NCBI GenBank assembly: GCA_010909165.1
Contig: MU008166.1
Coordinates: forward strand, 558,001 to 622,000
DNA length: 64,000 bases
Reading direction: 5' to 3'
DNA from: Anthoceros angustus
Lineage: Eukaryota > Plantae > Anthocerotophyta
Made by a program: the position numbers and the translations under genes
Part shown: positions 8,810 to 32,440 of the stretch, piece after piece
Numbering within the stretch: position 1 is the first letter of the stretch
Layout: each line of letters opens with the position of its first letter
The notes under the pieces: model-generated
Seen by the model: only the letters and a program-made list of their open reading frames with translations
What the model was told of the DNA's origin: nothing
The model's database searches: none

Positions 8810-11800
8810 ATGGAATTGACAGTCGACGGACCAGGACACTTGTTGTTGCGCTTCGGGAATGAGCAGAAAGACTACCAGTTTACAGATTCACTGCACAGAG
8901 CCACGCAGGATTTGCCTCGATTCCAGCTCAGAGAGGACCCTGACAATTCTAGGTTCGCAACACCAGTTGTCGCTTGCTTGATTGTATGGCATTTTGTTGC
9001 TGCACAGCTGATTGTAAGTTCATCGAGATGTTCTGCGTTCTTGTATTTACAGACTGGTCGATTTTGCAGAGTGGCAGCGTTGGAGGTCGGAATCTGGAAC
9101 AAACTCTGCGAGGAAGGACTGCTTACTGAAGCCTTGGAAGCCTTGGATCTCCTGGTGCACCGGGGATCGTATGTTCCAACATATTCCCTATACCGTGCCC
9201 TCAGGCGGTGTGTTGCTGAGAAGGATGCAGTTGCTGGCATTGAGTTTCATGGTCTCACGGTTGAGAGTGGGTATGAGTCAAGCACATTCCTGGCCAGCCA
9301 CATCATCCGCATGTATATCTCGCACGGAAGACTGCAGGAAGCAACACATTTCCTGAACACACGGGCTGTAGCAGACACCTCTATCTGGAATTGCATAATC
9401 CTAGCAAATGCTGAACGTGGTAATTCGACACAGGTCGTAGCACTCTACAGACGGATGCAACAGTTAAGTTTAAAGCCAAGCACCTATATACATGTGGCAG
9501 TTTTAAGAGCGTGTGCCTGTGTCGGAGACTTGGTATTTGGAGAGGAGGTCCATGCTGACATTGTTCGGAGCAAAGTTGAGCTGAATGTATTTGTTGGCAG
9601 TAGTTTGATTGACATGTATGCTAAGTGTGGGAGCTTGGAAGATGCTCGCAAAGTATTTGACAGTTTACCTGGGAGGGATGTGGTGACATGGAATGCCATG
9701 ATTGCAGGGTATGCTCAGCATGGCCTTTGTCACCAAGCCCTGGCACTTTATGCAAGTATGGAGCAAGAGGGCATTATTCCAGCTGATCGTATCACATTTG
9801 TGTGCCTGCTGAAAGCATGTGGTAGCACGGGGGCTTTGCAAGAGGGCAAGGAGCTTCACTTGCAGATAAAGGGAAGGGGGCTGGAATCAGATGCCATTAT
9901 TGGTAACAGCTTGGTGGACATGTATGCAAAATGTGGGAACCTAGGGGATGCTCGGAAAGTGTTTGATAGATTGTCCACAAAAGATGTGGTGACATGGAAT
10001 ACCATGCTCAGTGGATATGCCAACCAAGAGCTTGGTAAGGAAGCTCTGACTCTGTATGAAAGTATGCAGTTGGATGGATTTGTTCGAGCTGATCGCATCA
10101 CATTCTTGTGCATCTTGAAAGCATGTGCTAGCACTGGGGCATTATCCATTGGTGAGCTAGTCCACCGCCAGATTGAGGAAAGGGGGTTGGAAACTGATGT
10201 TGTGGTTGGCAGCAGCTTGATAGATATGTATGCAAAATGTGGGAGCTTGCGAAATGCTCGCAGACTGTTTGACAATCTACCAACTAGAAATGTGGTCACC
10301 TGGAATGCCATGCTTACAGGATATGTACAGCACATGCTTTTTGGAGATGTCTTCTCTCTGTATGCAGACATGCAAAAGGAAGGAAGGACTCCAGCGGACC
10401 ATGTTACATTTGTTTGCCTACTGAAGGCATGTGCGAACACAGGGGCATTACAGCAAGGCAAACACTTTCATTTTGAGATTCAGGAAAGCGGGATAGAATC
10501 CAATGTAATCCTTGGCAACAGCCTGGTAGAGATGTATGCTAAATGTGGAAGTCTGAAGGATGCCCGCAGAGTTTTTGACAATTTGCAGACCAAAGATGTG
10601 GTGTCATGGACTACGATGATCACAGGGTATGCTCAGCATGGACTTGGTATGGAAGCCCTTACGCTGTATGCAAGTATGCAACAAGAGGCTCTGTCTCCAG
10701 TTGATTGTGCCACGTTCGCATGTCTGTTGAAAGCATGTGGCGCTCTGAGTGCATTACGTGAAGGTCAGGAGCTTCACCGCCAGATTCAGGAAGCAGGACT
10801 GGAGACTGATGTCCATATCCAGAAGTGCCTTCTAGACATGTATATCAAATGCAGCAGCCAAGAGGATGCTCGCAGTATCCTTGACAAGCTGCAGGCCGAG
10901 GATTCTGTGACAGCAACCTCCATGATCACGGGGTATGCCAAACAGGGCAGCCTTGTGGATGCTCGTTCAGTGTTTGACCGTTTGCAGGCCAAAGATTTGG
11001 TGGCATGGACTGCCATGATTGCAGCGTATGCCCAGCATGGCCTTGGTCAGGAAGCTCTTGCGCTGTATGCAAATATGAAACTGGAGGGCATCACTTCAGC
11101 TGACCCTGTTATGTATGCGTGCCTTTTGAAAGCATGTGCAAGTGTTGGAGCTTTACAGCAGGGAGTGCAGCTTCATTCTGAGATTAAGGACAGGGGACTA
11201 GAAGCCAATGTGGCCATAGGTAGTAGCCTGGTAGACATGTATTTCAAATGTGGTAGGATGGAGGATGCACGGCAACTGTTCGACCGATTGCCATCCAAAG
11301 ATGTTGTGACATGGAATGCTCTGTTGAACGGGTACGCCCAAGGTAATGAGGGTAAGATGGCAGTGAAGTGCTTCCAGGAGATGGAGCGGAATGGGGTGGT
11401 GCCTGATGACACCACGTTTTTGTGTCTCCTTGTTGCATGCAGTCACCAGGGCCTAGTGGAGGAGGGCCAGCAGTACTTCCAGACGATGGCAGAGAAACAT
11501 GGTATTAAACCTTCTGAATATCATCGGAATATCATTGTTGACCTGCTTGGCCGATCAGGCTACCTAGAGAAGGCAGAAAATATGTTGCAAAATATGCCCT
11601 TTGAGAGTGACGCTGTGGGCTGGAGAGCTTTGCTGAGTGCCTGCAAAAGCCATGGTGACTTAGCACGTGGAAAGCGATGCTTTGACCATCTTGTGCGACT
11701 GCAACCCCAAGATGCCGCCCCTTATGTGCTTTTTGCAGATATTTGTGCAAATGCTGGTAGGTGGGGGGATGTAAAGAGAATAGAACACTTGAGAAGGTCT

Positions 11801-12205
11801 GCTGGTGCTTGCAAAAAGCCTGCGAGGGCCTGGATTGAGGTCAACAGCCAGGTGCAGACGTTCACTGTGGGAGAAGAGAGGGATGATGTTTCATCCAAAT
11901 TAAGGAGTGTCAATATGCTGCTGGAGGACAGCCGAGGACAACCAGGGATGGTGCTGAAGCCTGTAGCCAGCGACAAGGAAGATGCCTTGTGTGGGCATGC
12001 TGAGAAGCTAGCATTGGCATATGGCCTGCTGAACACTAGCGATGGCACACCCTTACTAGTCACCAAGAATCTTCGTATGTGCAGTGACTGTCACAGTGGC
12101 ACCAAGATCATGTCGAAGATTGAGAAACGAGAGATCGTAGTCAGAGATGCACACCGTGTTCACCGTTTTGTGAACGGTGGTTGTTCATGTGGGGATGTGC
12201 ATTGA
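8810..12205 (+). CDS. PLS-class PPR-DYW protein of the DYW:KP clade (candidate U-to-C RNA editing factor)
   Basis: Intact 1131-aa ORF with a long PLS array, E1/E2, KKPARAWIEV in place of the PG box (~11813-11842), HAEKLA (11996), CSDC (12080) and C-terminus CSCGDVH. The 5' end/start codon is uncertain. Confidence 0.93.
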   Translation: MELTVDGPGHLLLRFGNEQKDYQFTDSLHRATQDLPRFQLREDPDNSRFATPVVACLIVWHFVAAQLIVSSSRCSAFLYLQTGRFCRVAALEVGIWNKLCEEGLLTEALEALDLLVHRGSYVPTYSLYRALRRCVAEKDAVAGIEFHGLTVESGYESSTFLASHIIRMYISHGRLQEATHFLNTRAVADTSIWNCIILANAERGNSTQVVALYRRMQQLSLKPSTYIHVAVLRACACVGDLVFGEEVHADIVRSKVELNVFVGSSLIDMYAKCGSLEDARKVFDSLPGRDVVTWNAMIAGYAQHGLCHQALALYASMEQEGIIPADRITFVCLLKACGSTGALQEGKELHLQIKGRGLESDAIIGNSLVDMYAKCGNLGDARKVFDRLSTKDVVTWNTMLSGYANQELGKEALTLYESMQLDGFVRADRITFLCILKACASTGALSIGELVHRQIEERGLETDVVVGSSLIDMYAKCGSLRNARRLFDNLPTRNVVTWNAMLTGYVQHMLFGDVFSLYADMQKEGRTPADHVTFVCLLKACANTGALQQGKHFHFEIQESGIESNVILGNSLVEMYAKCGSLKDARRVFDNLQTKDVVSWTTMITGYAQHGLGMEALTLYASMQQEALSPVDCATFACLLKACGALSALREGQELHRQIQEAGLETDVHIQKCLLDMYIKCSSQEDARSILDKLQAEDSVTATSMITGYAKQGSLVDARSVFDRLQAKDLVAWTAMIAAYAQHGLGQEALALYANMKLEGITSADPVMYACLLKACASVGALQQGVQLHSEIKDRGLEANVAIGSSLVDMYFKCGRMEDARQLFDRLPSKDVVTWNALLNGYAQGNEGKMAVKCFQEMERNGVVPDDTTFLCLLVACSHQGLVEEGQQYFQTMAEKHGIKPSEYHRNIIVDLLGRSGYLEKAENMLQNMPFESDAVGWRALLSACKSHGDLARGKRCFDHLVRLQPQDAAPYVLFADICANAGRWGDVKRIEHLRRSAGACKKPARAWIEVNSQVQTFTVGEERDDVSSKLRSVNMLLEDSRGQPGMVLKPVASDKEDALCGHAEKLALAYGLLNTSDGTPLLVTKNLRMCSDCHSGTKIMSKIEKREIVVRDAHRVHRFVNGGCSCGDVH

Positions 12206-13120
12206 CAAGCAGCTTAGCTGCATATTTCCGGTCGAATCCACCGTGAATTTGTGGATAAGCGTTACAAATCACAGACCTCGCTGCGTAACTGCCAGTGCAC
12301 GCCGGGAACGGGGTGACGGGTTTCCGGCATCAGGAACGTCACGGCCGTTTTCTTGGAATGGGCTAACGTGGCACAAGTTCACGTCCATGCAGTCAAGTCC
12401 GCACCGTTCCGCACAAGGGCCTAGTTCTCCATTGTCCGGCCGCGCACAGGTAGTGTTCGCATTGGATTATTCACCAAAATACCAATTGCGTCGTCGGGGT
12501 TGCTCGAGTTTTTGGCTATTGATGAACTTAGGGTTTTCTTGCTGTTAGGGCTCTTGTCAATATATTCTCATAATATTTTTAATTCACTGTCCTAGCATAT
12601 ATTATGATGATATTTTTACAATTAATATGATGAATTATTTCATAATATTAGTTCTTTCATAGTATTGGTTATGGCTGCATATGAATAAACAGGCCGGTCG
12701 GCAACAGCCGCATATGGAACTTCCATCTACGGACTGTTGCCAATGGACCTAATAATAGGGTGGTCTGATATTAGGACGACGGCCGGAGGAGGCTTACAAC
12801 TCCTTGTACTTCAGAACAAATATCTTGGCGCTTCTACCTATGATAGGTATGTTTTGCGTGGCCTTAGCCTTGTGGGGCTTACATTCATGATGTCACACAT
12901 CTTACAAACATGTGCCTACTGCCCAAAAGCCGCAAGGCCCACAAGCCCCTCTCCGAGGTTCTCGCTTTTGCCAGGCCCTCATGTCATAATTTGCATAATT
13001 GGCATCTACGATAAGTAGGCCCCTCCCACATGCTACCTGATCATTCGTTCGCCTCTGATTGATTTGATTTCAATTGAGGTTTTGCCTAATTTGCTCTTCA
13101 GTTGATGTATTTATTAAAAA

Positions 13121-13531
13121 ATATTCAAGATCGTTTGGATAGTGATGAGTCTCATTTGGATGACCTAAAATCTGCCTCATATGTTCACAAAACCCTATCT
13201 CAAACAACCCGTTGGCTTCATAAAAAACGATATACTCCATACACTTCTCAGTAATAAATAATATTCAAGATCGTTTGGATAGTGATGAGTCTCATTTGGA
13301 TGACCTAAAATCTGCCTTATATGTTCACAAAACCCTATCTCAAACAACCCGTTGGCTTCATAAAAAACGATATACTCCATACACTTCTCAGTAATAAATA
13401 ATATTCAAGATCGTTTGGATAGTGATGAGTCTCATTTGGATGACCTAAAATCTGCCTTATATGTTCACAAAACCCTATCTCAAACAACCCGTTGGCTTCA
13501 TAAAAAACGATATACTCCGTACACTTCTCAG
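13121..13531. repeat. Tandem repeat, 140-bp unit, ~2.9 near-identical copies
   Basis: ATATTCAAGATCGTTTGGATAGTGATGAG... starts at 13121, 13261 and 13401. Confidence 0.95.
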
Positions 13532-14244: not shown

Positions 14245-15140
14245 AACAACTGTCATCATGTTCACGTCAAATGCTTGCCCAAGCAATCGACACCGCTCCT
14301 TCTGGCCACTCCCTGTCTCGTGGCTATCAAATCCCATGGCCAACTCCTCTGTGGGTTGGCTCTCCCAAGGCCTCGCCATGTCTGGCCCACCACAACGCCG
14401 GGCCATGGTTCCAAGGCGTAAGACTTGGACTTAGACACAAAGGTTGGCCAAGCCGCCATGGGGTGTCCAGCGTGTTCACAGGAAGTGCGGCAATGTCGAT
14501 GACTTGTTGGGCATGCCTTCCCGATGCTAGCACATCCTTGACAACATGATTAGGTCGCTTGGTGAACGACCTCAAGACACTTCAAATGTTCCAAGGAGCA
14601 AGGTTAGTCCACATGGACCTCAACCTATGAGCCCTCGAACCAAATTGAGTCGCATCCAATAGAAGCTCCGACCCAACACTCCTGGATCGTGGCAAAGTCC
14701 TCCCGAACTTGCTTCTTCACGCCATGCATGCCGGCACATTCTCCAACATGTATCCACAAGGCCTTTCTTGCCCTTTCTCGATCAAGCGCAAGATCCTCAT
14801 CGTCATAGAACAATGCTGTTCGTGGATCCTTCACCTTGACCCTTGCCTCGCAGAGGATAGTCCTTGACACTCCCAACCCCGCGATGACAAGGTCCACCGG
14901 CTGCCCAAGACAACTCAAATGGGACAACCCTATCATGCGAACATCCATCGCGCCTGGTAACCCTTCACCGACTCCCACGCCGAGGTTAGGTACTCCCCAT
15001 CAAGTCTCTTACGCGCTCGCGGACACAATCCTTGCTTTTGGATCCGGGTCACAATGCACGATCTTCGCACTTTGATGCCACACTTTAGCACCGCCCAAGC
15101 CGGATCGATGCCTCCAAAGAGTTCCACGAGCACTATGCCG
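14245..15140 (-). pseudogene. DNA cytosine-5 methyltransferase catalytic domain (DNMT3-like), retrotransposon-borne, frameshifted
   Basis: Motifs in canonical order across frames: I LVELFGGI (15107-15124), IV VDLVIAG-WECQGLS with catalytic Cys (14861-14878), DPRTALFYD, VI GYMLENVP (14735-14743), VIII LLDATQFGSRAHRLRSMWTNLAP (14603-14632), IX EPT..EELAMGF, X ERCRLLGQAFDVNMM (14266-14283). Confidence 0.88.
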
Positions 15141-15512
15141 CCTTCCCGAGGTCGCCATGTGATGACCGGTGTTTAGGTCACAAACAGCTCAACCCTAGGC
15201 AAGAACTTACTAGCCCGCTCATAGGACACCGGGTCCTCTTGCACCATCCTCCACGCCTTTTGCACGGCTCATTGCATAGCCACCACCCGTCCGAGTGACT
15301 TGAAGAACCTCCTCCGAGGGTGGTTGCAACCCTAGCTTGTCTTCCTCCTCCTCGCCGAAATCCTCCATCGCCGGGCCATGTTGTTAGACACACGCCAAGA
15401 GGTTCAAGCACGATGGCGTGTCCTTCACCACGGCGCCAAACACCGGGTAGACGTTGTTGGCAATGAGGTTCTCATGATTCTTGCCATGCACCGCAGAGGA
15501 TGCGGGCACAAT

Positions 15513-15540
15513 AAGGTCTCTAAGAAGTAGAGACGGCTCC
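15513..15540 (+). repeat. Left terminal inverted repeat of the DNA transposon
   Basis: Inverted match to 29290..29314. Confidence 0.75.
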
Positions 15541-15949
15541 TCGTCTCTAATTTTGAGGGTGTGAAAACAGGGGTTTGTTTTCGGAAAACCGTATTAGGCT
15601 CTTTTTACAATTTTACTTAAAAATGATGTATGAGGAATGAAGAGTTTTCAAATGAAACCGTGCATCTCAAGGTTTGTTTACTAATTTTTCCTTTTTTCCC
15701 TCTATACTATATGACCTACCCTTAAAAACACGCAAGATTTGAAGATAAATACCCGATGTGGGGTCTGTTTGCACATTTTCACACCAGCCAAGATTTCAAT
15801 AAGCGTTCACATAAGCGCTCACATAATAAATAGGAAAGTGTTTAAGCCGCTCACATCGTAAATAGGAAAGTGGTGGAACGATTCAACAAATGAAACGACT
15901 GACCGGACATCCGGCGCAGCGCACCGCTCAGCAGGAGTCAAAAGGGTTT

Positions 15950-16600
15950 TGATTTAAATATCCGGACACACGGTGCAAGCGCGCCGCATGCGCATGATGC
16001 CTCGGTGCTTGAGCGAATCGTGCCTTTCCACGCCGGACATGGCGCCGTCGCCATTGGCCGTTGAATAGCACGAATGTGTTCACCCCATCGCCTCCGCGCC
16101 ATCCAAAGTGCTTCGCGTCTGCGCACAACCGGGTCTTGTTCGATGGGGATGCAAAGCCATTCCGCTACAATTGCACCATGCTCCACAACGCGGAGATTTG
16201 GAATGGCCGCGCCTCAAGGATTTGGTTCACCATCATGTCGTGCACGACAATGTGCCGCGTATATGGGTAAACAAGGAATGAGTAAAAGGATCGCTGCGGT
16301 GGTCATCCACCCGCTTCGATTTACCAATCACCGCTTCGATTGTCAATGAGCAAATGTTTCAAAGATCCCTCCGTGAAGAGTGCCAATGCTCAAACATGAA
16401 TGCCGGAGGGCTAGCAAGGGCCACGTTGACAGCAGGATAGCACCGACAACAAAGACCGGCCATCCGGTCGAGGTTGGTGCCGACATGTATGCCTCACTAC
16501 AAGTCAAAGCACAACCGTTCTTCACGAGTCCAACAAGTAAAACGCAACTATGCTTGTCAATCGGGTCCTCCACGCACATCCCCACCAAACGATTCGGATG
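15950..16600 (-). pseudogene. Possible Ulp1/C48 peptidase-like C-terminal domain of the accessory gene (second copy ~17990-18600)
   Basis: VFVVGAILLSTWPLLALRHSCLSIGTLH resembles the 'F+P+....HW.L+++' strand region. The downstream WLCIPIEQD...GEHIRAI segment resembles the Q/C region. The catalytic His and Cys are not clearly intact. Confidence 0.35.
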
Positions 16601-16939
16601 CTAGATATTGTTTTCGCTGTCCACCCATGCGCCGGGAGTCCATCAGTGGATCATACTTCGCCAACGACTCAATGGGAGCCCGCTTTCCCCATCATCGTGC
16701 CCAAATGCGAGTGCCGCACCTGTGTCATCGTCGCACGCCCATGACGCCTCTCGCAGCTTTTCTCACCATCCGCCAATGCACCGCACACATCTCCCACAAC
16801 ACCAAACATCGGCTCTATCACATCTCCGGATGTGGCTCTCTTGCCGAATGCACGCCGCGTGAGCCAAAATCGCGCCACCGCTGAGAGTTCACCATCGGCT
16901 CTTTGCTAAACGCCTTGGGTCCCGTAGCCTTCGATCTCT

Positions 16940-17600
16940 CCCACCTCCTCCTCCTCGCTCGGCCAAAGGCCCAAATTATTCACGAGATCCATGAACCGAA
17001 TCGCCTGGGATCCACGTCTATTGAAATGACATCGCGCCTGCACTTGATAGCCGCAACCATTCGACCCGAGCTCGCACACCCGCCTAAGACCCACTCGCCT
17101 TCCATATCAGTATAGCTCAATGAGCTTCTTCAACAATCGATGGGCTTTTGATATGGGCATACCACCTTATCATCTCGTTATAACACGCTTATGTTCCATC
17201 GCTTTCTCAAAAGCAAGATGTCAACCCTTTCCATCTTTCATACCGCAGAAGACCGAGAGAAATGTTGCGGGACAATCCCGCTTGAGGGCGCCTGCGTGAT
17301 GTAATCACCGCATCATACAACTTGTCCGCTCAGCTTCACATTGGTTTTGTGCACGAATCGACACCTCCTTTACATGTTGCAAGCAATACATCCCGGACCA
17401 TTGACATATCATCCGCGAATGAAATACCACGATTCTAAATACCTCGACGTTGTGATGCCTCGAACCGCATGATGACGTTTTCAAACTCAAGGCGATCAAA
17501 CCGGTCATACTCTCTCGAGTTAGCATCCGGACCCAACCCTCTTGGCAAGTCCGTATAAACATAGCATACGGTCGGGTTCCACAACCGGCCATCCTCACGA
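16940..17600 (-). pseudogene. Beta-class N6-adenine/N4-cytosine DNA methyltransferase domain, copy A (more degraded)
   Basis: YTDLPRG (17537-17551), PYQKP (17142-17150), then GEWVLGGCASSGRMVAAIK. Duplicate of 18990..19660. Confidence 0.7.
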
Positions 17601-18989
17601 TGTTCCCACATATTATGCCTACCTTGGATCTCCGTCATCTCTCGAATGTCTTTAACTTGTCGGGACTTGCGGTCTCCAACAACCGCCGTTGCTCATCCTC
17701 CATTATTTTCCATGCTTTGGCCTTCATAACGTGTTCCTTGAAATTGTCCGGGAGTGCACTCCACTCAAGACAAGCATTCGCCAGCACAAAGGGCAAAGCA
17801 CCACCGTTAGACAAGAACATCGCGGCAAGTGAAGCAAGCCCAAAGCCACCAAGCGCTCACATAATAAATAGGAAAGTGTTTAAGCGTTCACATCGTAAAT
17901 AGGAAAGTGGTGGGAGCGATTCAACAAATGAAACGACTCGACCCGGACATCCGTGCGGCCGCATCGGGAGTCAAAAGGGTTTTGATTTAAATATCCGGAC
18001 ACACGGTGCAAGCGCCCACGCGGTATGATGCCTCGGTGCTTGAGCGAATCGTGCCGTGGGACATGGCGATCGTCTCATCATTGGCCGTTGAATAGCACGA
18101 ATGTATTCACCCATCGCCTCCGCGCCATCCAAAGTGTCACCGCGCTGGCGGTCTTGTTCGGATGGGGTTTGGATGCAAAGCCATTCCTTACAACCATGCT
18201 CCTGGAGATTTGGAATGGCAGCGGCCTCAAGGATTTGGTTCACCATCATGTGTCGTGCACGACAATGTGCTGTCGCGTATATGGGTAAACAAGGAATGAG
18301 TAAAAGGACTGCGCTGCAGTGTGGTCATCCACCCGTTTCGATTTACCAATCAGCCGTTTCAGATTGTCAATGAGCAAATGTTTCAGCATCCCTCTGTGAA
18401 GAGTGCCAATGCTCAAACATGAATGCTGGAGGGCTAGCAACGAAGGGCCACGTTCAGGCAACGGGATAGCACCGGACAGCCGGTGCAGCACCGGCTATCC
18501 GGTGTCGAGGTTGGTGTGCCAGACATGTATGCCTCACTACAAGTCAAAGCACAAATCTGTTGTTCACGAGTCCAACAAGTAAAACGCAACTATGCTTGTC
18601 AATCGGGTCCTCCACGCACATCCCCACCAAACGATTCAGATGCTAGAAATTGTTTCGCTGTCCACCCATGCGTTGGCAGGGGAGTCCACTGGTGGATCAT
18701 ACTTCTCGATCGACTCAATGGGGCTGCTCTTCCCCATCATCGTGCCCAAATGCGAGTGCCGCACCTGTGTCATCGTCGCACGCCTCGCCCATGACGCTCT
18801 CTGCGGTTTCTCACCATCGCCAATGCACACATCTCCCACAACACCAAACATCAGGGGCTCTATCACATCTCCAGATGTGGCTCTCTTGCCGAATGCACGC
18901 TGCTTCAGAGCCACAAAGCGCCTCGCCACCACACCCGGGTGAGTTCACCATCGGCTCTATGCTAAACGTCTTGGGTCCTGCATAGCCTT

Positions 18990-19660
18990 CGATCTCTCCC
19001 ACCTCCTCCTCCTCGTTCGGCCAGGCGTCCAAATTATTCAGTCGTAGATCCATGAACTGAACTGCTCTGGGATCCACGTCTATTGAAATGACACTGCGCC
19101 CAGACTTGATAGCTGCAACCATTCTTGACCCAGAGCCTGCACACCCGTCTAAGACCCACTCGCCTTCCATACTGTATAGCTCAATGAGCTTCTTCAACAA
19201 TCTGATGGGCTTTTGATATGGGCATACCACCCTATCATCTGCTGTGTTATAACACAGCTTATGTTCCTTGCCTTCTCGAAAAGCAAGATGTCAACCCTTT
19301 CCATCTTTCATAGCAGTGCAGGACCGAGAGAAATGTTGCGGTGACAATCACCTTGAGGGCGCCGCCCGTGGTGATGTAATCACCGCATCATACAACTTTG
19401 TTCGAGCTTTCACATTGGTTTTGTGCGGAAGCATGACACCTCCTTTACATGTTGCAAGCAATACATCCCGGACCATTGACATATCATCATGAAATACCAC
19501 GATTCTAAATACCTCGACGTTGTGATGCCTCGAACGCATGATGGCGTTTTCAAACTCAAGCGGCGACGCGTGTCATACTCTCGAGTTAGCATCCGGACCC
19601 AACCCTCTTGGCAAGTCCGGAAGCAACATAGCATACGGTCGGGTTCCACTGGGGCCATCC
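18990..19660 (-). pseudogene. Beta-class N6-adenine/N4-cytosine DNA methyltransferase domain, copy B
   Basis: Catalytic-loop-like YAMLLPDLPRG (19603-19617), then RIVVFH, then CPYQKPIRLLKKLIELYSMEGEWVLDGCAGSGSRMVAAIKSGRSVISIDVDP (QKP 19207-19215, SAM-binding motif 19129-19149). This matches the N6_N4_Mtase pattern QKP..Ll..li...s..Gd.VLDpF.GSGtt..aa...gR..igie. Confidence 0.82.
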
Positions 19661-20499
19661 TCACGATGTTCCCACATATTATGCCTACCTTCTTTGGATC
19701 TCCGATGTCATCTCGAATGTCTTTAACTTGTCGGGACTTGCGGTCTCCAACAAGCCGCCGTTGCTCATCCTCCATTATTTTCCATGCTTTGGCCTTCATA
19801 ACGTGTTCCTTGAAATTAAGTGCACTCCACTCAAGACAAGCATTCGGCACAAAGGGCAAAGCACCAGTGTAGACAAGAACATCGGCAAGTGAAGCAAGCC
19901 CAAAGCCACCAAGCGTTCATACACATGAAATGATCTCAAATGCACCGGCCGTGTGGAATGTCTGCAAGCCACCGCCATCGACCATAGTTTTGAACGCCGG
20001 AAGTTGCCGATCCCACAAGACTGTATTGAGGGTAGCGCCCCTAACTCGCTCAAAGGTCTCACAGCCTGTTCTTTGCAAGTGACGTGGATGAGGTTCAATT
20101 TTTGGCTTTCTCCAGCCCACCCTTGCATTTGCCTCAAACTCATTTCTCCGCATGAACCTTCATACATGCCTTGTTTAAGGTTGTTGTTGCCCGCAGCAGT
20201 AATGTTCGATACCCGGAAACACTTCCACACTCTCACCGCACATCCGCTTTTTAACCTCAATGACCACAAGGTCTCTCACGTAGGTGTGTTCCGTGTCCTC
20301 CTCGTGGCCTTTGTCTGCTCGCTAAGGGCCGCATCCACTGCTCCAGAATCGCTTACATTCCCACTTCTCAAATATCTCGTCCACATACCTGCATTCTTCA
20401 TCAACTTTTGCCACACAAGAGTCCAGTGCTGTCCACAAGCCCGTGATACTGCATCCTTGGGGCCATGCTTTGTTGCATCCCACTTTGGGATCCCGCCAG

Positions 20500-20980
20500 C
20501 GCATACACATCCAACCCCTTGCACTTCAAACCTTTCGATCTCCTAGATAGCAACTCACTTCTAATGTAACGACTCGGTCCATGAAAGTAAATGTCTTTCT
20601 TGCATCCGCGATCGTGTTGTGGTCCGTAGCTACAATCCTCATCTCCCCTCTGTGAGTCCAGCTAGGACATATGCATCCATCCACTTGTACTCTTCCTTCA
20701 AGTGCTGAGACAGACGGACCTTGCTCGAAAGAATGATTACCCCAAGACGAAAAACTGTACACACCTTGGTCCACCTTCTCAACGCCGAATTGCTTTTGTC
20801 AAGACACCGTGAAGGATCGACTATCACAACCATTGGGACACGCCCACCCAGGATGTTGTTTCATCTTTTGCATCAAAGCCTCCACCCAAGCGAGATCCAG
20901 CTTCTCACCGCCGCACAGTTCCTCCGTGGTTTGCAACACTTGATTGGCAGCTTCAAAGTAGACTCCCAAACTCGTTTGAT
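20500..20980 (-). pseudogene. ParB/Sulfiredoxin-like domain upstream of the methyltransferase
   Basis: Cross-frame reading LKLPIKCCKP...KLDLAWVEALMQKMKQHP...VPMVVIVDP...GVYSF..WGNHS (20730-20741)...YKWMDAYVLAGLTEGEMRIVATDHN (20616-20624)...TFTFMDRV. This fits the ParB-like pattern (G)GNH(R/S)...HN. Confidence 0.62.
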
Positions 20981-21907
20981 AGCAATACCGTCCCTTCTAC
21001 CTTTGCAGACCGCTCTTATTGCGAAGCGCTATCGCAGCTACCGCCTTAGCTTTCTCCACAAACCCGGCGTTCATCCTCCTCTTCTTCTTCGCTCTCTCCA
21101 CAATTGCAGGCTTCCTTGTTTCCCTTTGATTTCTTGGCTTTCCCATTGTCATGTGCACCACCCCGAACTGCTTTGCAACAAAAGCTCCTCCTCCTTCCTT
21201 CCTTCCCCGCGATGGGGACTCGCTTGTACCCTTCTACGATCCAACACAGCCCCGTTAGACCTCCGTGAGCAATCACGGATGGGGAGAGAACCTCGAGATC
21301 GCCTTTTCGCCACGCCAAGCCTTCTCTTCGTCGCAGAGCCACCTTCGTGATCCCGATCGCCTTCCGACTCCGCAAAATACCATCCGGAAATGCCTCATTG
21401 TCCTCACCGCCGCCTCACAGTTCCTCGTGGTTTGCAACACTTGATTGGCAGCTTCAAAGTAGACTCCCAAACTCGTTTGATAGCAATACCGTCCCTTCTA
21501 CGTCCGGTTTGCATCTTATTTGCGGAAGCTGTCATCGTCGAGTAGCGCGTCCTTAGCTTTCTCCACAAACAGGCAGTGGTTCATCCTCCTCTTCTTCTTC
21601 GTTCTCCTCCACAATTGCAGGCTTCCCTTGTTTCCCTTTGATTTCTTGGCTTTCCCATTCTTTGTTGTGCACCACCGCTCCGAAATCATTTGCCAAAGCT
21701 CCTCCTCTCTTCCTTCCTTGGACTTCACGATGGGGACTCTGCACCCTTCTACGATCCAACACTCCGTTAGACCTGAGCAATCACGGATGGGGAGAACCTC
21801 GAGATCGTCTTCTTGCGCCAAGTTCTCCTCTTAAATCGGCCTTCGCATCTGATCGTCTTCCGACTCTCGGCAAAATACCATCCGGAAATGCCTCATTGTC
21901 CTCACCG
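20904..21907. repeat. Tandem duplication, ~498-bp unit x2
   Basis: CTCACCG microhomology at 20904, 21403 and 21901. The internal sequence is repeated with indels. Confidence 0.85.
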
Positions 21908-23149
21908 TCGTCCACTGGTGTCCTCCATTACCGGTTAGGCTTCCTTCCCTTTGCGGATGAGTTATGCGCATGGGGTCACCAAGTCCGCTGGCTCAAAACC
22001 CGGACGTCCGGCTGGTCGGGCACATCCGGGGCATCACTAAAAGTGACATGAGACGCAATGCGCCGGGCTCACCGCCATGACCTCTGGACGGTTAGCCAAC
22101 GAAACATTTGCGTAATCTTTATTCCTTGGATGCTTTCTAAGCAAAGTGATTCTGGTTGTTTCTCGTATGCACCGTGGGTTGTTTCCCAATATTTGCACTC
22201 GTAGTAAGCATACCATCTTCTCCATTGGGCGCATCCTTGCAAATGCCCTTGTTGGTTGCTTCTCGATGGTAATTGCTTCGCGATGAACCGGTGGGTTGCT
22301 TCGCACCGGCGGATGCATTTCTACACGGTTCCACATGCACCGCCACGCCATCGATATCCCGGCGGATGCACCGGCCTTGGCCGCCACATACCGGGTGGCA
22401 CCGGAAGTCGACCGCTTTAGCTCCACTAACGGTTTGCCTCACTCCTTCTAAACAAATTTGGTGTATAACCTTGTGGAACACAATGTACCCATCATTGGCT
22501 CTCAACCCCTCGAGCAGCTCAACACCTCCTACCGGCAAGACAGTGTCAAAAGTCTTGATCGCACCGAGTAGACGCGACATTGGGGCCGTGCTCGTCGTGG
22601 TCGCCTTCGGTGCACAGGAAAATTACGTAACTCGGTCATTCTTCTCAACGAATCACGTGAATGTAATCGCTGACATGAAGACTTTGAATCGGACCGTGGT
22701 GCACCCATAATGTACACATACACCAATTGGCCAGCAGGACGCCGCATACCCGTGTCTTGTCCGAGATGTCGAACGAGAGTGCTCCATAAACAACTTTCAA
22801 CATATCGATTTCCGCTTCCTTGTAAGGACTTTGAAACGATGCTCGGTTGGAGTTGATGTGGTGGGGCGCTCACCGCTGGTTCTCGCATGCCGGGGTCTTG
22901 GTCTGGACTCGTAGCGCCCATCCGGGTCATAATCAACGCCTTACGCCGTGCCGTTTTGTCCGCGGCACTCCTTCTCCATCGTGAGCATTGTTCCGCTTCT
23001 TCTTTAGAGGGCCATCAGACAAATTGAGCAAGCGGTCATCAAGGGTCTATGAGCACCTAATCGGAATGCAATGGTGAATCAAGAGCAAGAAACAACCTCT
23101 CCACTGTCCGATGTCGGCGTGACACCAACTTCGGGCGATGTACCACCCC

Positions 23150-23540
23150 GCCACACACTCCTATGGTTCGCATGCGGACAACAATACTATGAGAATGTGC
23201 CTCTATACCCGCCAGATTTAATCCATTTTGGCGCCAAATTCTCTTCCACAATAAGACGATCGCATGATGGCTCATGGCAACTAGATCGGCATGTGCAGAC
23301 TCGCATGAATCGCAGACACGGCCGAATTGCAAAGGTGGTGCGGCATTTTGCCAAGTTTAGCCGGGGTCTGGCTCAACTGTCACAACAAGGAATACAAGAT
23401 ACTTCCACGAATATTCAGGTTTTGCCAAAATCCGCATACATACATCCGACGCCTCGATCATGGCAATCATTTGTGGCATTTAACGCCTTCGCCGCCATGA
23501 TGTAGCCGCAAATCTCACATCCGTGTTTCGGCGTCGGTCA
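23150..23540 (-). pseudogene. Cys/His-rich region resembling an extended PHD (zf-HC5HC2H) finger at the N-terminus of the accessory gene
   Basis: Cross-frame CEICGY..GEGVKCHK...GVGCMY...KCRTTFAIRPCLRFMRVCTCRSSCHEPSC...YCCPH. The spacing is only approximate because of frameshifts. Confidence 0.4.
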
Positions 23541-24323
23541 TTGCGGTCCAAAGATCCGAGATATTTAGTCACATCTTAGAAACCCGACTGCGTGTCTTCG
23601 ACTCGAGCACATTGACCATCATCGCTGGCTTGTCTCGGTAGCACGCTGGCGGCTAACGACCTAAGCGCAGAGGAGGAGTTCTTTGATTTGGTAAACGACA
23701 GAATAGTTCCAGATGATGCAGATCTCGGACATGTGTCTGAGTCCGAGATAGTGGACTTGGCGGCGGTGGCCTCGGCACAGGACTTCCATGTCGCAAGCAC
23801 CGTGTATTCCATCTAGTAGACATTGCACCGCACACCGAGTTGAACCCCGTGACGTCCGGTGATGGCTTGCCCGTGTTACCGGGAACTGAAACGACATGGC
23901 CTTAGATGAAACGGACTGCAGGGTGATACATCGGACGTGGCCGTGCGATGGAGATTTGCTCTTGTTTGATCCTCGGATGGACACGAACGGGCCAAAGGGA
24001 TCAAGAAGAAATCGCGCCCATGTGGGACGGGTGGCCGCGCCGCTATCCGGAGAGGCCTCGATATCCACATCCCGACGACGCAACTGGGCCCGCCGACACC
24101 CGCCCCGCACTGTACCCGGGTTTTGTTCAAGTCACCGGAGCGAAGAAATTGGCCGATGTTCTGCTCGATCCAAGTCCGCAAGCGGATTTCTCCGGCGCCA
24201 CCGAGACAAGGTGGCGCCAACAACAAACCCATTTTGTGCGTCGCAGAGTACTATCAACCATACACACTGTGAACCACTCATGAGAATAAGACGGATTCAA
24301 TCGAGTATTCGAGTCTCCTGATT

Positions 24324-27030
24324 GTGGTGAGATTGTGCATGAGATCGTGGATTTGGATTGCAATATGCACCGTGGGTCTCGAAGGCACTAGTAGAGGAAG
24401 GACACGGAGATCACATCCGCAGCCGACCCAAGACCGCTCGAGATGTGAAATCACCGACCACGGGTTACATTTGCCGAAATGCTGCCTCGCTAATCCTAAG
24501 TCTAAAGGGCTGGAGTTGCATTCCGTGGCGAGGCGGTGTGTTCCACCAAGAACCGCAGCAAGAGTTAAGCGGATCACGCTCGACAAGCACCGTAATCGGA
24601 GCCATGTGCGCACTCGAAGGCAAAGGGAAAAAGTGCTTAGGCCGGGGAAGTGGCAAACTCAAGTCGATCCGTGTGTCCTTTTTTTCCATGACGCAAGGGG
24701 AGCAGGAACAGCATTTACAAGACCTTATTGATATGGTGGAGGACGAGGAAACGGGTGTGGTGACCGGATGGGTGAACAAGGTACCACATGGGAAGGTTCC
24801 GATATGTGTCAGGGCATTCTGCCGGGTGTTCTGCATTGGAGCACTGCGGTACCGGAATGCTCAAACCCGAGTACAAAAGGGAACCAGTTTCTCGAGGCAA
24901 GGCTTGGAAGAATCCCAACTTCATATGGTCTACAAGTCGTGATGTGGATGGATACATTTTCAAAGGAAATGTGGAGAGACTACCCAATGCAGAAGTATTC
25001 AATCACGATACATTCACAAAGGAGGAGATTTTCATAGAGTATGCCAGGCAACAGGCTAGAACAATTACCACACATGTATGTTACAGCTATTTCTGCAAGC
25101 TGTGGATACGCCACTTTCGGTCGGTGAAGATTCCACGATGCAACCGTTTTCAATATGTGTTGACTGTGAGAAACTGAAAGCGAAAATAAAAAATGCGGGG
25201 AACGATAGAGAGCAAGGTGAAGGCCGTGCATCTATCTTAGATATGTGGTTAAACAACAGGATGTCCGGTGATTGGCAGTTGTCCTTTATGGGCCCTCCCA
25301 CACCCTAAAGCCCGTTTTAGGGTTTTGTACAAATATTTGCTCTTCCCGCAGTCCCAAGGAACGCTTTTTCGACTTGGACTTGTACTCATGGTGCGCCTCG
25401 TCTTGTATGTGCGGACACCGAGAGCTCCTTAATTACCACCGCGATCAACAAAGGAGCGGGCGAAGATGCATCGCGGCAAGTGTATGGCTCAACCGACCAA
25501 GTACATTGGAATGGCGATAGATGGTATGGATCAAAAAAAGCGAGTTGCCTCATTTCCGTAGTGCCCAAGGATGTCGATAATGCCCTTGTCTCTTCATGTG
25601 CTTGGGGTTTTGGTGTTTAGCAAATACATGCGGACTTCGTGTACCTAAGCTTCCCAATATTCAATGATCCCAACGGGACAATAGCGTGGTCCAGCATGTT
25701 ATTAACAATTGGGAAGGCCACTTGCCTAAAATTCTATACCTCCGGATGGACAATACCGCGCCCGTAATAAGAATCAAGAGGTGTTGGACAGCGATGTTAG
25801 TGTCCAAGGGTATTTTCAAGAAGGTTAAAGTGGGCTTTTAATTGTTGGCCATACCCATGATCGATTGATCAAATGTTCTCCGCTCACAGTCGAATCTAAA
25901 GGAGGCCTACACCTTGCCGAGCCGATCGCTTGCCCGCAGAGAGCGAGATACTCCATCACCGAATGTCTTCTCATGAAGGAAGTGCCGACTTCAAGAAATA
26001 TCTGGCCACCGGTGGTCCTCCAACATTCTGATCGCACAATCACAAATTTTCAACATCGCTTTAAGATAACTCGAGAAGAGTTGCCTAGTCACGAGTATGT
26101 TACGGTGTTGAGGTGCAAGCAATTTTCCACACCGCACACCGGACCCCGGATGGTGGTACTGTGCGGGATGGAGTACCAGAGAGGAGATTGTGGCGTGAGC
26201 GTGCCATTGCATGTGAGGGCGAAAGGCAAAGGGCAAAAGGAACATGCGATCCGCCTGCATATCGCCGGAGTGGAGGACAATAGGCTTAAAACGCCGATGA
26301 TGTTTTAATGATCAACAACTCATGGTGGGAAGCTCGGGAGGAGCAACTAGCAATAGCGGGTGTGGTAGCCTCGTGCTCTCCTCCACCGGAAACCGCATGG
26401 ACATGGTATAATAGAGGAGAGCAGACCAGCCAACCAAGATCCAGATGAAGTGGTAGTAGATCTTGCATTAGCAAGACGATATTCGGACAAGAGCGAGAGA
26501 TTTACACAGATCATCGCTAGACGACAACGTCTGAACAACAAGACAAAGGGTCTATTGCGAGATTGAAGGCATGATGCTTGCGGTATGCAGCGGATGACCG
26601 GAGGGCCCTTTCTCCGGGTAAGGTTGTGGCATTGACCATGATGGTGTTGAACTGATAGCACAAGTGCATTGGTGGCGGATGAAAACCAAAATGCACCGGA
26701 CGGAAGGTACTGGAAGAGTGGGTGCCATGCACCCCAACAAAGAGGAAAGGGAGACGGAACCCTTTGAAGAGGCATGTGCAACCCATCAATCTAATGGAGA
26801 CAACAATTATGGGTTATGATTTTGAGCTAACGAGGAAGGACTTTGAGCAAAGACACAATGGAAATGTTGAAGAGAAAGATCTTTGAGCTCGAGCGGAGCC
26901 AAGTGAGGAACACCTTTGCTTCCTCCGCTTGATACCGCAGAAGTGGTGACGAACGGATTGATTCCGGCGATCTCGACAATGTTGAATCTTCCGATGCATC
27001 CGCTGATTATTTGGTGGACTTGCTTGAAGG
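24324..27030 (+). pseudogene. Sola-like DDD/E transposase, frameshifted
   Basis: PICVRAFCRVFCIG, FCKLWIRHFRSVKIPR..FSICVDCEKLK (CxxC), YIGMAIDGMDQKK (25517-25540), LPKILYL-MDN...NKNQ (25746-25780), GFLIVGHTHD-IDQMFS (25845-25881). This is the signature of the DGMDQ/DN..NKN/GHTH.DIDQ transposase family related to Sola. The 3' limit is approximate. Confidence 0.75.
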
Positions 27031-29289
27031 TGTGGACTCGTGAGGAGCCGATCGCAACCCACCTAGGATTCTAAATTTTGAGGTTGGCCAGATAGAATCA
27101 TGAAGTCTCGCATGACTTAGCAAGGATGTAACCAAAGGTTTTTGTCCGGTTGAAGGTGCACCGGGTTTTTGTCTACGGTTGATCTTGACCGGATGTCCGG
27201 TTGTTTGTTGGTTCTCAATGTATGGAAGGCATGATTCTGCTTCACCGGTATAGCTTGTTTGGCGCTTGATGGGGAACGGGGAACCCCGATCGTGGTTCGG
27301 GAACGGGAAACCCCGATCGTGGTTCGGCTCAGCTTTGGATGCGAGGGAGCTGGTGTGAAGGGAGGTTGATTAAACCCCAAACCGCAGTTCCTCCCTTACT
27401 CTCCTACTCTCCAATTACTTCCCATGTTCCTGTCCACCTTTACGGTCGGTTTATGCTTGAGTGTGGACTGTTGTTGCCTCCGGTGTGCGTTTCTGCTGGA
27501 GGTGAGGCGGTTGCAGGGTAATAAATCCAGGAAGGGGCTTGTTCATGAGCAAGCGACGGCGTTGCGCAAGGGGCTGACAGCAAGACGACTGGTGGTGCAA
27601 GGCACGCTTTCTTTTCCTGCAATCCAGGTGAGTGCATGGGAGTTGCACACATGACATGTTGCAATTGCCTTTTCCTCCACTCGACTGCTTCTGTCTCGGC
27701 TACTCTGACCAGGTTGGCCATCCTAGTTGCTATTGGTAGCCCGGAACTGGCTGGCAGGTTATGGCGGAGGTGCTGCTGAGCCCACTATCACTGCACAGAA
27801 CTGAGGAACTGTATGCGCCATCGTGCTTTTCGTGTGTTGGGTGTTCATGCTTGCAGAGGTTGCACCGTTGAATAATGAGGACGAGGAGTGGTTCAGATAC
27901 CGCCCCCCCTGATCAAGCGGACATCCAGCAAAGAGGGCTGGAGGAGGTCCTCGACGCAGTGCGGCGGCCGGGCAAGAGGAGGAATCCTCCGTTGGAGGAA
28001 ACCTGTGTGGCACCGTTTCATCCCCGAACGCCGCTTGGTTTTCAAGGGAGGTGGGATCCGAGTTCTTGTGCGCGAGCTGAGGGGAGTGGACACCTCCTGA
28101 GAACCCGACAGATGAGGAACCGCGAGATATCTCGTGTCCCATGTGATGGGAGGAGCCGACGGCAACAAGAGGAGCCGCAGGTGCCCTACCTCGCAGTTGA
28201 AGGCTGAAAATCGGAGCTTTCCTGGGAGGAGAAGGAGGTCAAGATGCGTGGTCTCGCGAGGCGGATGAGGGGAGCTGGCCCTTGTGATGGCGGCGAATCG
28301 CCAAAGCATCGCGAGCGGAAGGAGCTTCCGTGAAGACCGAGCCAGTGATAACGTGTGCATGCCGTTTTTTTCCTCCTCTGGATGCCTTTGTATGCTTGCG
28401 CTTGGTCTTGTGCATGATGAGTGACAAGTGCATTGGTGTATGCATCGTGTTCGGACGGGAGGTGTGAGATTAGGATTTTCGGATAAGTTTTGGGTAGGCA
28501 CATGAGACATTTTAAAGCTTTCCTTTGTTCACATAGGAACTTTCTTAGTTATGTGGGACTGAGTTGAGGGTGAGCTCAAGGAGCTCCATGGACGCCATGT
28601 TCACGCCTCTCGGATTGTGTGTGAGGTTAGGCTTGGATGTTTGGATCACCATGCATTCGATACTTATCATCTTCGTCCATTAGGCGGGGTTGCTTATCGA
28701 TGATGCGAGACGGTGAACGGCCATCAAGTGGATAAGTAAGTCTTCCGAAGGCAAGAGGAGGGTCGTGGCCGGACGTCCGTGCCACGGCCACGGAAACGGA
28801 TATTACTTCCTTGCTCCTTGCGTTTTCTATTCCATACGATTCGAGTGTGTACAAGTGGATATGTTGGTTTGAAATTACTAGGATATTTATACTATTCGAG
28901 GTTGCCTTGGAACACGATTTTTCTAAATAGCATTGGCGCTGGTACTTTTTGCGAAACCGATGTATAAAATAGCCTTCATCATTATTGTTGGTCAAGGGCG
29001 GGGTTTGGAACGAGGCATATATTGATTACTAACGGTACAAATGTGTCGATTAAAATAAATTGCCCGATGTGGCTGGATTTCGTTAAAAACAGAAAAAGGC
29101 TTTTTTCAACTGTGTTCAATCCCAAGGAGCTTGACGGTCCATTGGCATGAGGAACCAAGAAAGGTGCTTTTCACAAAGGTGGGCCCATCAAGAGTGTGTT
29201 TGGGTCTTGTTTGGGTGCAAACCCTTAAAAGAGGGTTCCGTTTTCATTTTAGCTGGTCATGGCCCAAACGACCTCGGTCTCTAAAAAGT

Positions 29290-29314
29290 GGAGCTGTCTC
29301 TACTTAGAGACCTT
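29290..29314 (-). repeat. Right terminal inverted repeat of the DNA transposon (duplicate at 30522..30546)
   Basis: GGAGCTGTCTCTACTTAGAGACCTT. It is preceded by an internal GGTCTCTAA that can pair with TTAGAGACC. Confidence 0.75.
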
Positions 29315-29329
29315 GTTCAATCCGTTCAT

Positions 29330-29700
29330 CGGTTTGCTCAGCCTTCTCCACCGGGTTTATAGTAGATTGTCTCCGTCCACAAATCCACCATGACCTGTGT
29401 TTGTACAAAGCGTCCGCTCCCAAGAAGACATCAAATGTGTCTCGATCGCTGACCAAGAAAAAGGACAAAGGTGAAGTCTGTTCTTGGTTTGAATGAAACC
29501 TTCATTGTACCTTGTCACCCCAACACATGCTCCGTGGTCCCACCGTTCGATCTTCCACTTGGTTTCCTTCAACCTTTCTTGGTGGAGACCCAACGCTTCC
29601 TTCACTCTTCTTCCAACGATCACCGGCTGTGCTCCTGTCAATCAACACCTCCTTGGTGCGAATCCATTGATTTCAATGTGCCTCTCCCGATTGTTGACCA
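29330..29700 (-). pseudogene. Gypsy aspartic protease (second copy ~30570-30930)
   Basis: RRVLIDTGAQPVIVGRRVKEALGL (DTG active site, clearest in the 30741..31247 ORF), followed by GGFVD...YYRPGW. Confidence 0.8.
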
Positions 29701-31199
29701 AAGCCACTCCCACTGCAGATTCCGCTTCTCCACGAGATGCTTGGCTGAGGTCAAGAATGACATCATTGCCACTGGCAAATCTTGGACACTTGCTTCGCCT
29801 CTTCAAGGGTTGTCAACATCCGCCGAGTCAAACCCCCGACTTCCTTCACGCCAACCCCATGTCTTGTAGGTGAAACATGGCATCTCCGAAGCTTTTGTGC
29901 CATCTCCCAAGAATCTGCATGGGTTTCTCCACATCGCCCACTGACTTTGATGTTGCTCCCAGTTGCTCCTGTTGGCAATGGCTCAAACGACTTTGGCATC
30001 TTGGCATAGGTTCTGGAAGAGGATCCCAAGCTTCCTTCCGTGTCTTCCTTGCTCCTTGCTTTCTATTCCATACGATTAGTGTGTACAAGTGGATATGTTG
30101 GTTTGAAATTACTAGGATATTTATACTCAGATTCAGGTTCCTTGGAACACGATTTTTCTAAATAGCATTGGCTGGTTGCCTTGAACCGATGTATAAAATA
30201 GCCTTCATCATTATTGTTGGTCAAGGGCGGGGTTTGGAACGAGGCATATATTGATTACTAACGGTACAAATGTGTCGATTAAAATAAATTGCCCGATGTG
30301 GCTGGATTTCGTTAAAAACAGAAAAAGGCTTTTTTCAACTGTGTTCAATCCCAAGGAGCTTGACGGTCCATTGGCATGAGGAACCAAGAAAGGTGCTTTT
30401 CACAAAGGTGGGCCCATCAAGAGTGTGTTTTGGGTCTTGTTTGGGTGCAAACCCTTAAAAGAGGGTTCGTTTTCATTTTAGAGGTCACGGTTGGCCTAAA
30501 CGACCTCGGTCTCTAAAAAGTGGAGCTGTCTCTACTTAGAGACCTTGTTCAATCCGTTCATCGGTTTGCTCGACTCCAGCCTGGTCGATAGTAGATTGTC
30601 TCCGTCCACAAATCCACCATGACTCGAGGTTTGTACAAAGCGTCCGCTCCCAAGACATCAAAGTGTGCATCGGTGACCAAGCGGTGTACCTCGACAAAGG
30701 TGAAGTCTCTGTTCTTGGTTTGAATGAAACCTTCAGCTTGTCACCCCAACACATGCTCCGTGGTCCCGGTGATGCGGATCTTCCACTTGGTTTCCTTCAA
30801 CCTTTCTTGGTGGAGACCCAACGCTTCCTTCACTCTTCTTCCAACGATCACCGGCTGTGCTCCGGTGTCAATCAACACCCTCCTTGGTGCGAATCCATTG
30901 ATTTCAATGTGCCTCTCCCGATTGTTGACCAAACTCCCACTCGTGCGACATTCCGCTTCTCCACGAGATGCTTGGCTCGAGGTCGACAATGACATCATTG
31001 CCCATTGTGGCACATCTTGGACACTTGCTTCGTCTTCAAGGGTTGTCAACATCCGCCGAGTCAAACCCCTGACTTCCTTCACGCTCAACCCCATGTCTTG
31101 TAGGCTGAAACATGGCATCTCCAGAAGCTTTTGTGCCATCGTCTCCGTCAGCAATCTGCGCATGGGTTTCTCCACATCGCCCACTCTGGACTTTGATGT

Positions 31200-32440
31200 T
31201 GCTCCCACAGTTGCTCCTGTTGGCAATGGCTCAAACGACTTTGGCATCTTGGCATAGGTTCGGGAAGAGGATCCTGAAGCTTCCTTCCGTGTCTTCCGCC
31301 TTTGGTGTCAAGACATCCTCTTCTTCCTGAGCTATCTTCTCTCGTCGCGGAGGTTTCTTCCTGCCCTTGGATCCGGTCAGTCGCCATGTATCAAGCTTGT
31401 GCTCATCTTCTTCGTCCTCGATGATGAACTGCTGCTCTCCTTGATCTTCGCCTTCCGCACCAACTTCTCCAGCTTTGCAAGGCGTGCCACGTAGCATCCA
31501 TCGTCTTCTTTGATGCTTCCGTTTCTTTTGTCCACGGGACTTGGTGCCTCCTCCAGGCGCCTTTGCTCTTCTGATTTTGTGGATGAGGTTGGCCGAGATG
31601 CATTGGCGGGTTGCTGCTCGATAACCCGTGAGCGCAATTCGGATGCTTCTCCCAACATGCCGCTTCATTGTGCCGTACCTCCCACACCTAGGGCATGGCT
31701 CCTCACCCTTGACTCCTCCGAATGCATGCTCGCACTCATGAGGGAATGGTCGTCCCTCGGCACCTCACGCAGGGCTCGCCACTCATGTGGGCTTGTCTCG
31801 CCGAGCTCCTCCACTCGACCTCGCGTCGGTCATGTCGTCCACCACTCCTACTTGTCTTTGGAGTAATCACTTGCAACCACGAGAAATGTCGGGGCCCTAT
31901 CTTGTCGATCTATACACTTCCTTGAGGGTGTAGTGTTGCCCCCGTCTTGTGCACCGCTTGTTGCACCTTCATGCGCAGTGCATATGGCAATGCACAAGTA
32001 CTTCTCTGCCCAGTCGGTCACTCATGATCTTGGTGTCACGTACCAGCTGGTCGATTCTTGATAAGCCATCTTGCGGTCTCGCTGACTTCATCTTGAAGTG
32101 TCGGCTCGGAGATCTTCTCATCCGTGCTTGCGAAACTCCGGTAGGAAGATGTCAACATCTCTTGATGGGATCGTGCCACTCGGTGCCTCTGCCAGGTTCC
32201 TTGAGCTTGAGCGCTACTCACTGGTCCTCCGGATGTGCTCAACAACCTCGCCTTGTGCTCGCGATAACGCCAATGCTTCATCCCCAAGTACTTGCATTTG
32301 GATGAAGCCGTATCGCTTCGTGTATCCGGTCTTCAATTCCATCTCCGCACACACGCCGTACTTCGATGAAGTCCTCCGGTGGCAAGGTGCCCGCTCGTCA
32401 TGAACAACTCCATTCGATCCTTGTCTCCTCCCATCTTGGC
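31200..32440 (-). pseudogene. Gypsy gag with CCHC zinc knuckle, frameshifted
   Basis: Cross-frame CGRYGHNEAACWEKHP at ~31640-31700. Gag-like helical segments run from MGGDKDRMELFM at ~32440. Confidence 0.55.

Follow-up and report, generated by a model that had tools for sequence, protein, structure and literature searches.

In the genome of the land plant Anthoceros angustus, positions 15510-29317 of a 64,000-nucleotide stretch of contig MU008166.1 (assembly GCA_010909165.1, positions 558,001 to 622,000 of the forward strand; hereafter the window) very probably hold one old copy of a DNA transposon that is bounded by terminal inverted repeats (TIRs), carries two genes and is non-functional as assembled. 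The first gene is a remnant of a Sola-like transposase of the DUF7869 family, and the second, which points away from it on the opposite strand, joins a ParB-like N-terminal domain to a beta-class amino-methyltransferase domain. The architecture itself was published in 2025 for an element of the brown alga Ectocarpus; what is new is the land-plant host for this known transposon design. A single broken copy adds little when taken alone. The one point worth following is the methyltransferase motif DLPRG, in which the catalytic sequence is altered in a conserved manner; this bears on whether such accessory proteins truly methylate DNA.

Two divergent genes within one inverted-repeat unit

An earlier note, made from the DNA letters alone, had described a TIR-bounded unit of 13.8 kb with a plus-strand transposase and, divergently on the minus strand, a ParB-like domain followed by a beta-class methyltransferase. 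This layout was confirmed, both for the imperfect inverted repeat that delimits the unit and for the coding regions, where homology was found at 24625-27040, 20205-20921 and 18943-19817. The main features are as follows.

15510-15540, plus strand: left terminal inverted repeat, pairing with 29290-29317
29290-29317, minus strand: right terminal inverted repeat, with the terminal letters ...CCTTGTT
24625-27040, plus strand: remnant of a DUF7869-type (Sola-like) DDD transposase (Pfam PF25273; tblastn with L001, L007, P0167 and P0168)
20177-20921, minus strand: N-terminal ParB-like domain of the methyltransferase gene, with its linker (tblastn to L007 and L002; family alignment)
18943-19817, minus strand: beta-class amino-methyltransferase-like domain, copy B (Pfam PF01555; phmmer; alignment to P0001 and P0004)

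In the case of the transposase, one plus-strand open reading frame (ORF) of 51 amino acids matches Pfam DUF7869 with an E-value of 2.1e-6, and DUF7869 proteins, which gave 58 tblastn alignments to the window, align over the full remnant (a 580-aa protein of contig L001, a 619-aa protein of contig L007, and proteins P0167 and P0168). The motifs DGMDQKK (25520-25540), RMDNTA (25743-25760), VGHTHD (25844-25861) and IDQMFS (25864-25881) can be read in it, and all three acidic positions of DUF7869 align there (DGMDQ, MDN and GHTHD.IDQ), as expected of a Sola DDD transposase. The reading frame of the remnant changes many times, with high-scoring segment pairs in all three frames, and contains more than ten stops. 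The DUF7869 family is common in Chara, Cymbomonas, bivalves, corals, echinoderms and amphioxus. Sola1 elements have been reported from bivalves, cnidarians, echinoderms and amphioxus (checked for the bivalves only). By these comparisons the transposase can be classed as Sola-like, and putatively as Sola1 by the label of the like-built Ectocarpus element; it counts against the narrower name that it is borrowed from the paper on that element rather than taken from the Repbase Sola1 sequences.

In the intact DUF7869 transposases of L007 (56-1915, minus strand) and L001 (378-2120, minus strand), the last third of the protein resembles, by eye, a small reader module of the chromo/Tudor type (GHPFWLGKV...VHWW), and a remnant aligns to 26323-26883 of the window.

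Turning to the linkage of the two genes, we found that the association of methyltransferase and transposase is replicated in other DNA. On L001, a metagenome contig whose proteins are closest to those of Chara braunii, the DUF7869 gene lies opposite a gene for the 789-aa ParB-like/methyltransferase protein P0017. On L007, a Logan contig that carries the subfamily nearest to the window, the gene for the 619-aa DUF7869 protein is divergent from ParB-like and methyltransferase ORFs, and the two genes of this contig match the two of the window. Furthermore, a Chara braunii contig (L003, BFEA01000138.1) holds both genes 8 kb apart on the same strand (10328-12315 and 20385-21999), a layout that may represent two adjacent elements or a different arrangement.

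That two genes from different elements came to lie between two similar repeats, by nesting or through a chimeric assembly, is an explanation that the local sequence invites: this part of the window is a patchwork rich in repeats and includes three tandem duplications, the right inverted repeat is present twice, and indel-rich differences between the duplicates hint at poor local assembly. It is nevertheless highly improbable. Chance nesting is very unlikely because the gene pair recurs on L001, on L007 and in Chara braunii; the divergent pair is found on the first two of these and in the published Ectocarpus element, and the match of L007 is to both window genes. The pairing of the transposase with the ParB-like/methyltransferase gene is real.

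At the level of the family, the element has two genes. Gene 1 encodes a DDD transposase of the DUF7869 family, of the type classed as Sola1 in the 2025 Ectocarpus paper, which would cut and paste at termini rich in GTCTCTA. Gene 2 encodes one protein in which a ParB-like domain at the N-terminus, a helical linker and an N6_N4_Mtase fold of the beta class are combined; this accessory protein would bind DNA by its ParB-like domain and act via the methyltransferase fold. Gene 2 appears to be of phage-type origin; fusions of ParB-like and methyltransferase domains occur in tailed phages too.

A ParB-like domain joined to a methyltransferase fold

The methyltransferase assignment was tested at the profile level. 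A single minus-strand ORF (18811-19230) matches Pfam N6_N4_Mtase (PF01555) with an E-value of 2.2e-10 and a score of 41.3 bits, above the curated cut-off of 26.7. The match spans profile positions 163-217 only; the relatives P0017 and P0023 cover most of the profile. An exhaustive phmmer search with 18814-19290 (minus strand) as the query returned 3094 proteins at E-values up to 0.001, headed by proteins of public read assemblies, namely P0001 (1.9e-35) and then P0002-P0004. The 446-aa P0001 aligns to 19817-18943 as a colinear, intronless match with 44% identity; a search for named land-plant relatives of P0001 returned Logan proteins only. The motif order given in the earlier note, a catalytic loop followed by QKP and DGCAGSGS, is borne out by the coordinates on the minus strand: DLPRG (19603-19617), PYQKP (19207-19221) and DGCAGSGS (19126-19149). 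This is the beta-class order, in which motif IV precedes the target-recognition region and motif I comes last. As assembled, three in-frame stops and one or more frameshifts interrupt the reading frame of copy B.

Intact relatives, among them P0017 (789 aa), P0023 (670 aa) and proteins from Adiantum and Chara braunii, have the ParB-like region as the N-terminal domain of a single protein whose other end is the methyltransferase. In the window, 20921-20205 (minus strand) matches a 488-aa ORF of L007 (tblastn E-value of 2e-16), and the same part matches a 189-aa ORF of L002 (2e-9). It holds the motifs WGNHSFEQ (20721-20744) and ATDHN (20616-20630) and is interrupted by stops and frameshifts.

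Several observations point to a ParB-like fold for this domain. In a Foldseek comparison with the PDB, the top 24 matches were all ParB, Spo0J, Noc, KorB, sulfiredoxin or Atu1540 structures; the two AlphaFold models are of low confidence (mean predicted local distance difference test scores of 51 and 60), so that these fold matches are only suggestive. Of the 100 nearest named Atlas clusters, 62-67 were ParB_N or DUF6551. The family alignment has a pattern that resembles the ParB boxes, with a GG-HS-EA stretch followed by V-GL-EA and then HN, and the phage proteins that best cover the methyltransferase domain include fusions of ParB_N with N6_N4_Mtase. The authors of the Ectocarpus study likewise call the domain of their protein ParB-like (PMC12477816).

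A number of results weigh against this assignment. A Pfam search of four N-terminal domains, run at E-values up to 10, gave no ParB_N match and only DUF6551, on P0023, with an E-value of 0.005. A profile search of PDB sequences with the ParB-like domain gave chance matches, and alignment to the phage ParB_N part with hhalign gave a probability of 0.2. In addition, the E-values of the Foldseek matches were only 0.04-2, the structural comparison (VIA) gave Z-scores of 3.5 or lower, and the likeness to ParB was not significant in any single test. Taken together, the evidence that the N-terminal domain is ParB-like is weak but consistent.

The question of catalysis turns on motif IV. Amino-methyltransferases are defined by the motif (D/N/S)PP(Y/F/W), whose aromatic residue stacks on the flipped base. 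Neither methyltransferase copy in the window (a second, tandem copy A is described below) has this motif; both read DLPRG, as do P0001, P0004, P0007 and L007. At this position DFPYG (P0017), DAPYG (Adiantum) or DIPHG (P0023) is found in deeper eukaryotic relatives, and DLPYG or DPPY in phage-like matches. Three features are preserved: the motif DGCAGSGS for binding S-adenosylmethionine (SAM), PYQKP, and the acidic residue that follows motif I. Because the tetrapeptide is D-L-P-R and not D-x-P-Y, canonical writing of N6-methyladenine (6mA) or N4-methylcytosine (4mC) by the DLPRG lineage appears doubtful; and since an arginine is kept at motif IV together with the SAM motifs, such writing should not be presumed.

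This bears directly on the proposal in the earlier note that the element writes its own 6mA or 4mC mark, which is not supported for this lineage. The better methyltransferase copy in the window carries the three stops and at least one frameshift listed above. At the level of the family, the proposal would be that the methyltransferase, targeted by the ParB-like domain, modifies the DNA of its own element, to self-mark or to evade silencing. Although the retained DGCAGSGS, PYQKP and acidic residue would suit such an enzyme, and the whole domain of P0017 aligns with a phage enzyme in a fold family of true DNA amino-methyltransferases, we consider it improbable: every member of the closest lineage seen has DLPRG and with it lacks the base-stacking aromatic residue, and no outstanding palindrome array is present in this copy. 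The Ectocarpus authors suggest the same idea for their own element (PMC12477816).

Alternatively, the accessory protein may serve chiefly as a DNA- and SAM-binding factor. As a tentative proposal, the land-plant Sola-like lineage would have kept a protein with a ParB-like domain and a methyltransferase fold in which D-x-P-Y was replaced by D-L-P-R in all members seen; its function would then be non-canonical, for example in protecting or targeting the element as a DNA clamp that binds SAM. In the form of a pseudo-enzyme, which we likewise hold to be possible but on the unlikely side, a ParB-like clamp with a SAM- and DNA-binding fold would help the element to transpose, or shield it, and leave bases unmodified. 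DLPRG is conserved, and the SAM motifs are retained, among members only 31-60% identical to the window, and conservation across such diverged members makes the arginine look selected rather than a defect of a single copy; moreover, P0001 keeps an open frame of 446 aa. This is an argument from sequence, however, in which the arginine might still stack on a base, and the DLPRG sequences come only from one public sample (SRR33208241) and from this window.

Element ends, decay and assembly quality

The two arms of the inverted repeat are about 28 nt long and differ by two mismatches and one 3-nt indel. Within the 64-kb window the 19-nt core of the repeat is confined to the right end and the duplicate of that end, and it occurs 0 times in shuffled sequences. 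In addition, the 7-mer GTCTCTA or its complement is present three times within 45 nt at either terminus, the left one having GTCTCTA twice and the complement once. CAAT precedes AAGG at the left end and follows ...GTT at the right; on the assumption that the left terminus has lost 3 nt (AAC), these two copies are probably a 4-bp target site duplication. When the element and one CAAT are removed, an open frame of 100 codons spans the junction on the minus strand, an observation that is post hoc and from a single copy. Sola elements have 4-bp target site duplications, a DDD transposase and TIRs of 11-1124 bp (PMC10741241); the putative CAAT duplication would fit the first of these features in length, and the repeats of about 28 nt fall within the range of the last.

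Three points count against these boundaries. The CAAT duplication requires a left terminus that is 3 nt shorter than the right one, the evidence from the inverted repeats comes from the single copy in this window, and the related contigs L001-L008, from other species, share no terminal similarity with the element ends.

The remaining features of the element and its surroundings are listed here.

15509-15512: putative target site duplication CAAT, left copy, directly 5' of AAGG
29318-29321: putative target site duplication CAAT, right copy, directly 3' of ...CCTTGTT
15813-17859 and 17851-19919: first tandem duplication, 86% identical (blastn), which yields a second, worse methyltransferase copy; 15813-17859 (minus strand), duplicate A, corresponds to the 3' half of the ParB-methyltransferase gene
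20904-21412 and 21403-21910 (20904-21910 as a whole), minus strand: second tandem duplication, of 0.5 kb, 81% identical, within the ParB-methyltransferase gene, covering the start of the ParB-like domain and an acidic N-terminal region
28806-30048 and 30044-31297: third tandem duplication, of 1.24 kb, 90.5% identical, straddling the right end
21911-24624: intergenic region between the divergent genes, without recognisable coding homology
27272-27327: tandem repeat of a 27-nt unit, 2.1 copies, with CGATCG

Copy A of the methyltransferase, whose remnant spans 16887-17754 and includes DLPRG (17537-17551) and PYQKP (17142-17156), is more degraded than copy B and shifts its frame about every 100-150 nt. 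The third duplication takes in the last 0.5 kb of the element and 0.7 kb of flank, and by this the right inverted repeat is repeated at 30522-30549. In the intergenic region no ORF had a Pfam match, and the ORFs from the equivalent region of L007 do not align there. A search for palindromes or parS-like arrays revealed no palindromic 8-12-mer present three or more times within the element.

Both genes are broken as assembled, and the damage has an unusual form. Between the duplicate copies, small indels outnumber substitutions (107 versus 77, 34 versus 26 and 45 versus 27 in the three duplications), and the differences fall in short scrambled clusters separated by perfectly identical blocks. 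Since indel-rich, clustered differences are unusual for neutral decay, assembly or polishing problems in the repeats are possible. It speaks against the reading of an old, decayed copy that some of the damage, and possibly the duplications too, may be assembly noise rather than decay. The window also contains, 3 kb from the element, an intact gene for a 1131-aa PLS-class PPR-E-DYW protein (8810-12205, plus strand; Pfam DYW_deaminase E-value of 1e-30), which indicates that unique DNA in the window is accurately assembled and that it is land-plant nuclear DNA.

The element would have inserted into other repeat DNA, probably with the 4-bp duplication CAAT. By eye, the flanks at 14625-15133 and 29318-29640 (both minus strand) look like a decayed retrotransposon: a sequence on the right resembles a protease (DVFLGADAL), and one on the left resembles a C5-methyltransferase (ELFGGI). 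A Ty3/gypsy reading of the flanks is based on these motifs seen by eye, and Pfam found no match on seven flank ORFs. Further out, at 13112-13531, a 140-nt unit is present in three tandem copies that are 97-98% identical.

Comparison with known systems

The earlier note had set the methyltransferase beside the enzymes of Marchantia. MpDN4MT1a/b are 4mC methyltransferases of sperm, and they share with the window gene that a prokaryote-type amino-methyltransferase is present in a land plant. They differ from it in being host genes and in having the canonical TSPPY motif, and a ParB domain is not mentioned for them. They were absent among the relatives retrieved for the window methyltransferase, and the suggested link to DN4MT1 was not upheld.

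A nearer parallel for the second gene is found in phages. The ParB_N and N6_N4_Mtase fusions of Streptococcus phages Javan69 and phi-SsUD.1 have the same domain order, and their methyltransferase domain aligns end-to-end with that of P0017 (25% identity, E-value of 3e-12), including motif IV, T/YxKP and motif I. In contrast to the window family, the phage proteins are 417-442 aa long, have the canonical DPPY and are without the long linker and the transposon context; moreover, their ParB parts have no detectable sequence similarity to it.

Among eukaryotic transposons, Plavaka elements (EnSpm/CMC-type) of the red alga Bostrychia carry the accessory genes PAG2 and PAG3, with ParB and N6-methylase domains (bioRxiv 10.1101/2025.02.11.637652). 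Like the element described here they are DNA transposons with prokaryote-type DNA-modification and ParB-like genes, for which binding and modification of their own DNA have been proposed. Their transposase, however, belongs to another superfamily, and two separate genes encode a ParB fusion to a 2-oxoglutarate (2OG) oxygenase and a fusion of the N6-adenine methylase with a SET domain. Tandem inverted-repeat arrays are reported for them, whereas none is outstanding in the window copy.

The closest counterpart is Sola1-1_Ec32 of Ectocarpus, an element family of 21.5 kb described in a transposon survey of 2025, in which a protein of 1104 aa with ParB-like and N4C/N6A methyltransferase domains is encoded opposite the transposase (Genome Biol; PMC12477816). 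The architecture, for which the earlier note knew of no description in a plant DNA transposon, is therefore not new in itself. Compared by description, the two elements have the same two genes in divergent orientation. They differ in host (a brown alga versus a land plant), in length (21.5 kb versus about 11-14 kb) and in the size of the accessory protein (1104 aa versus about 790 aa in P0017). Our literature searches did not find the design described in land plants. The copy in Anthoceros angustus extends to that group a class of transposons, recently described from algae, in which the element brings along a prokaryote-type DNA-modification gene of its own.

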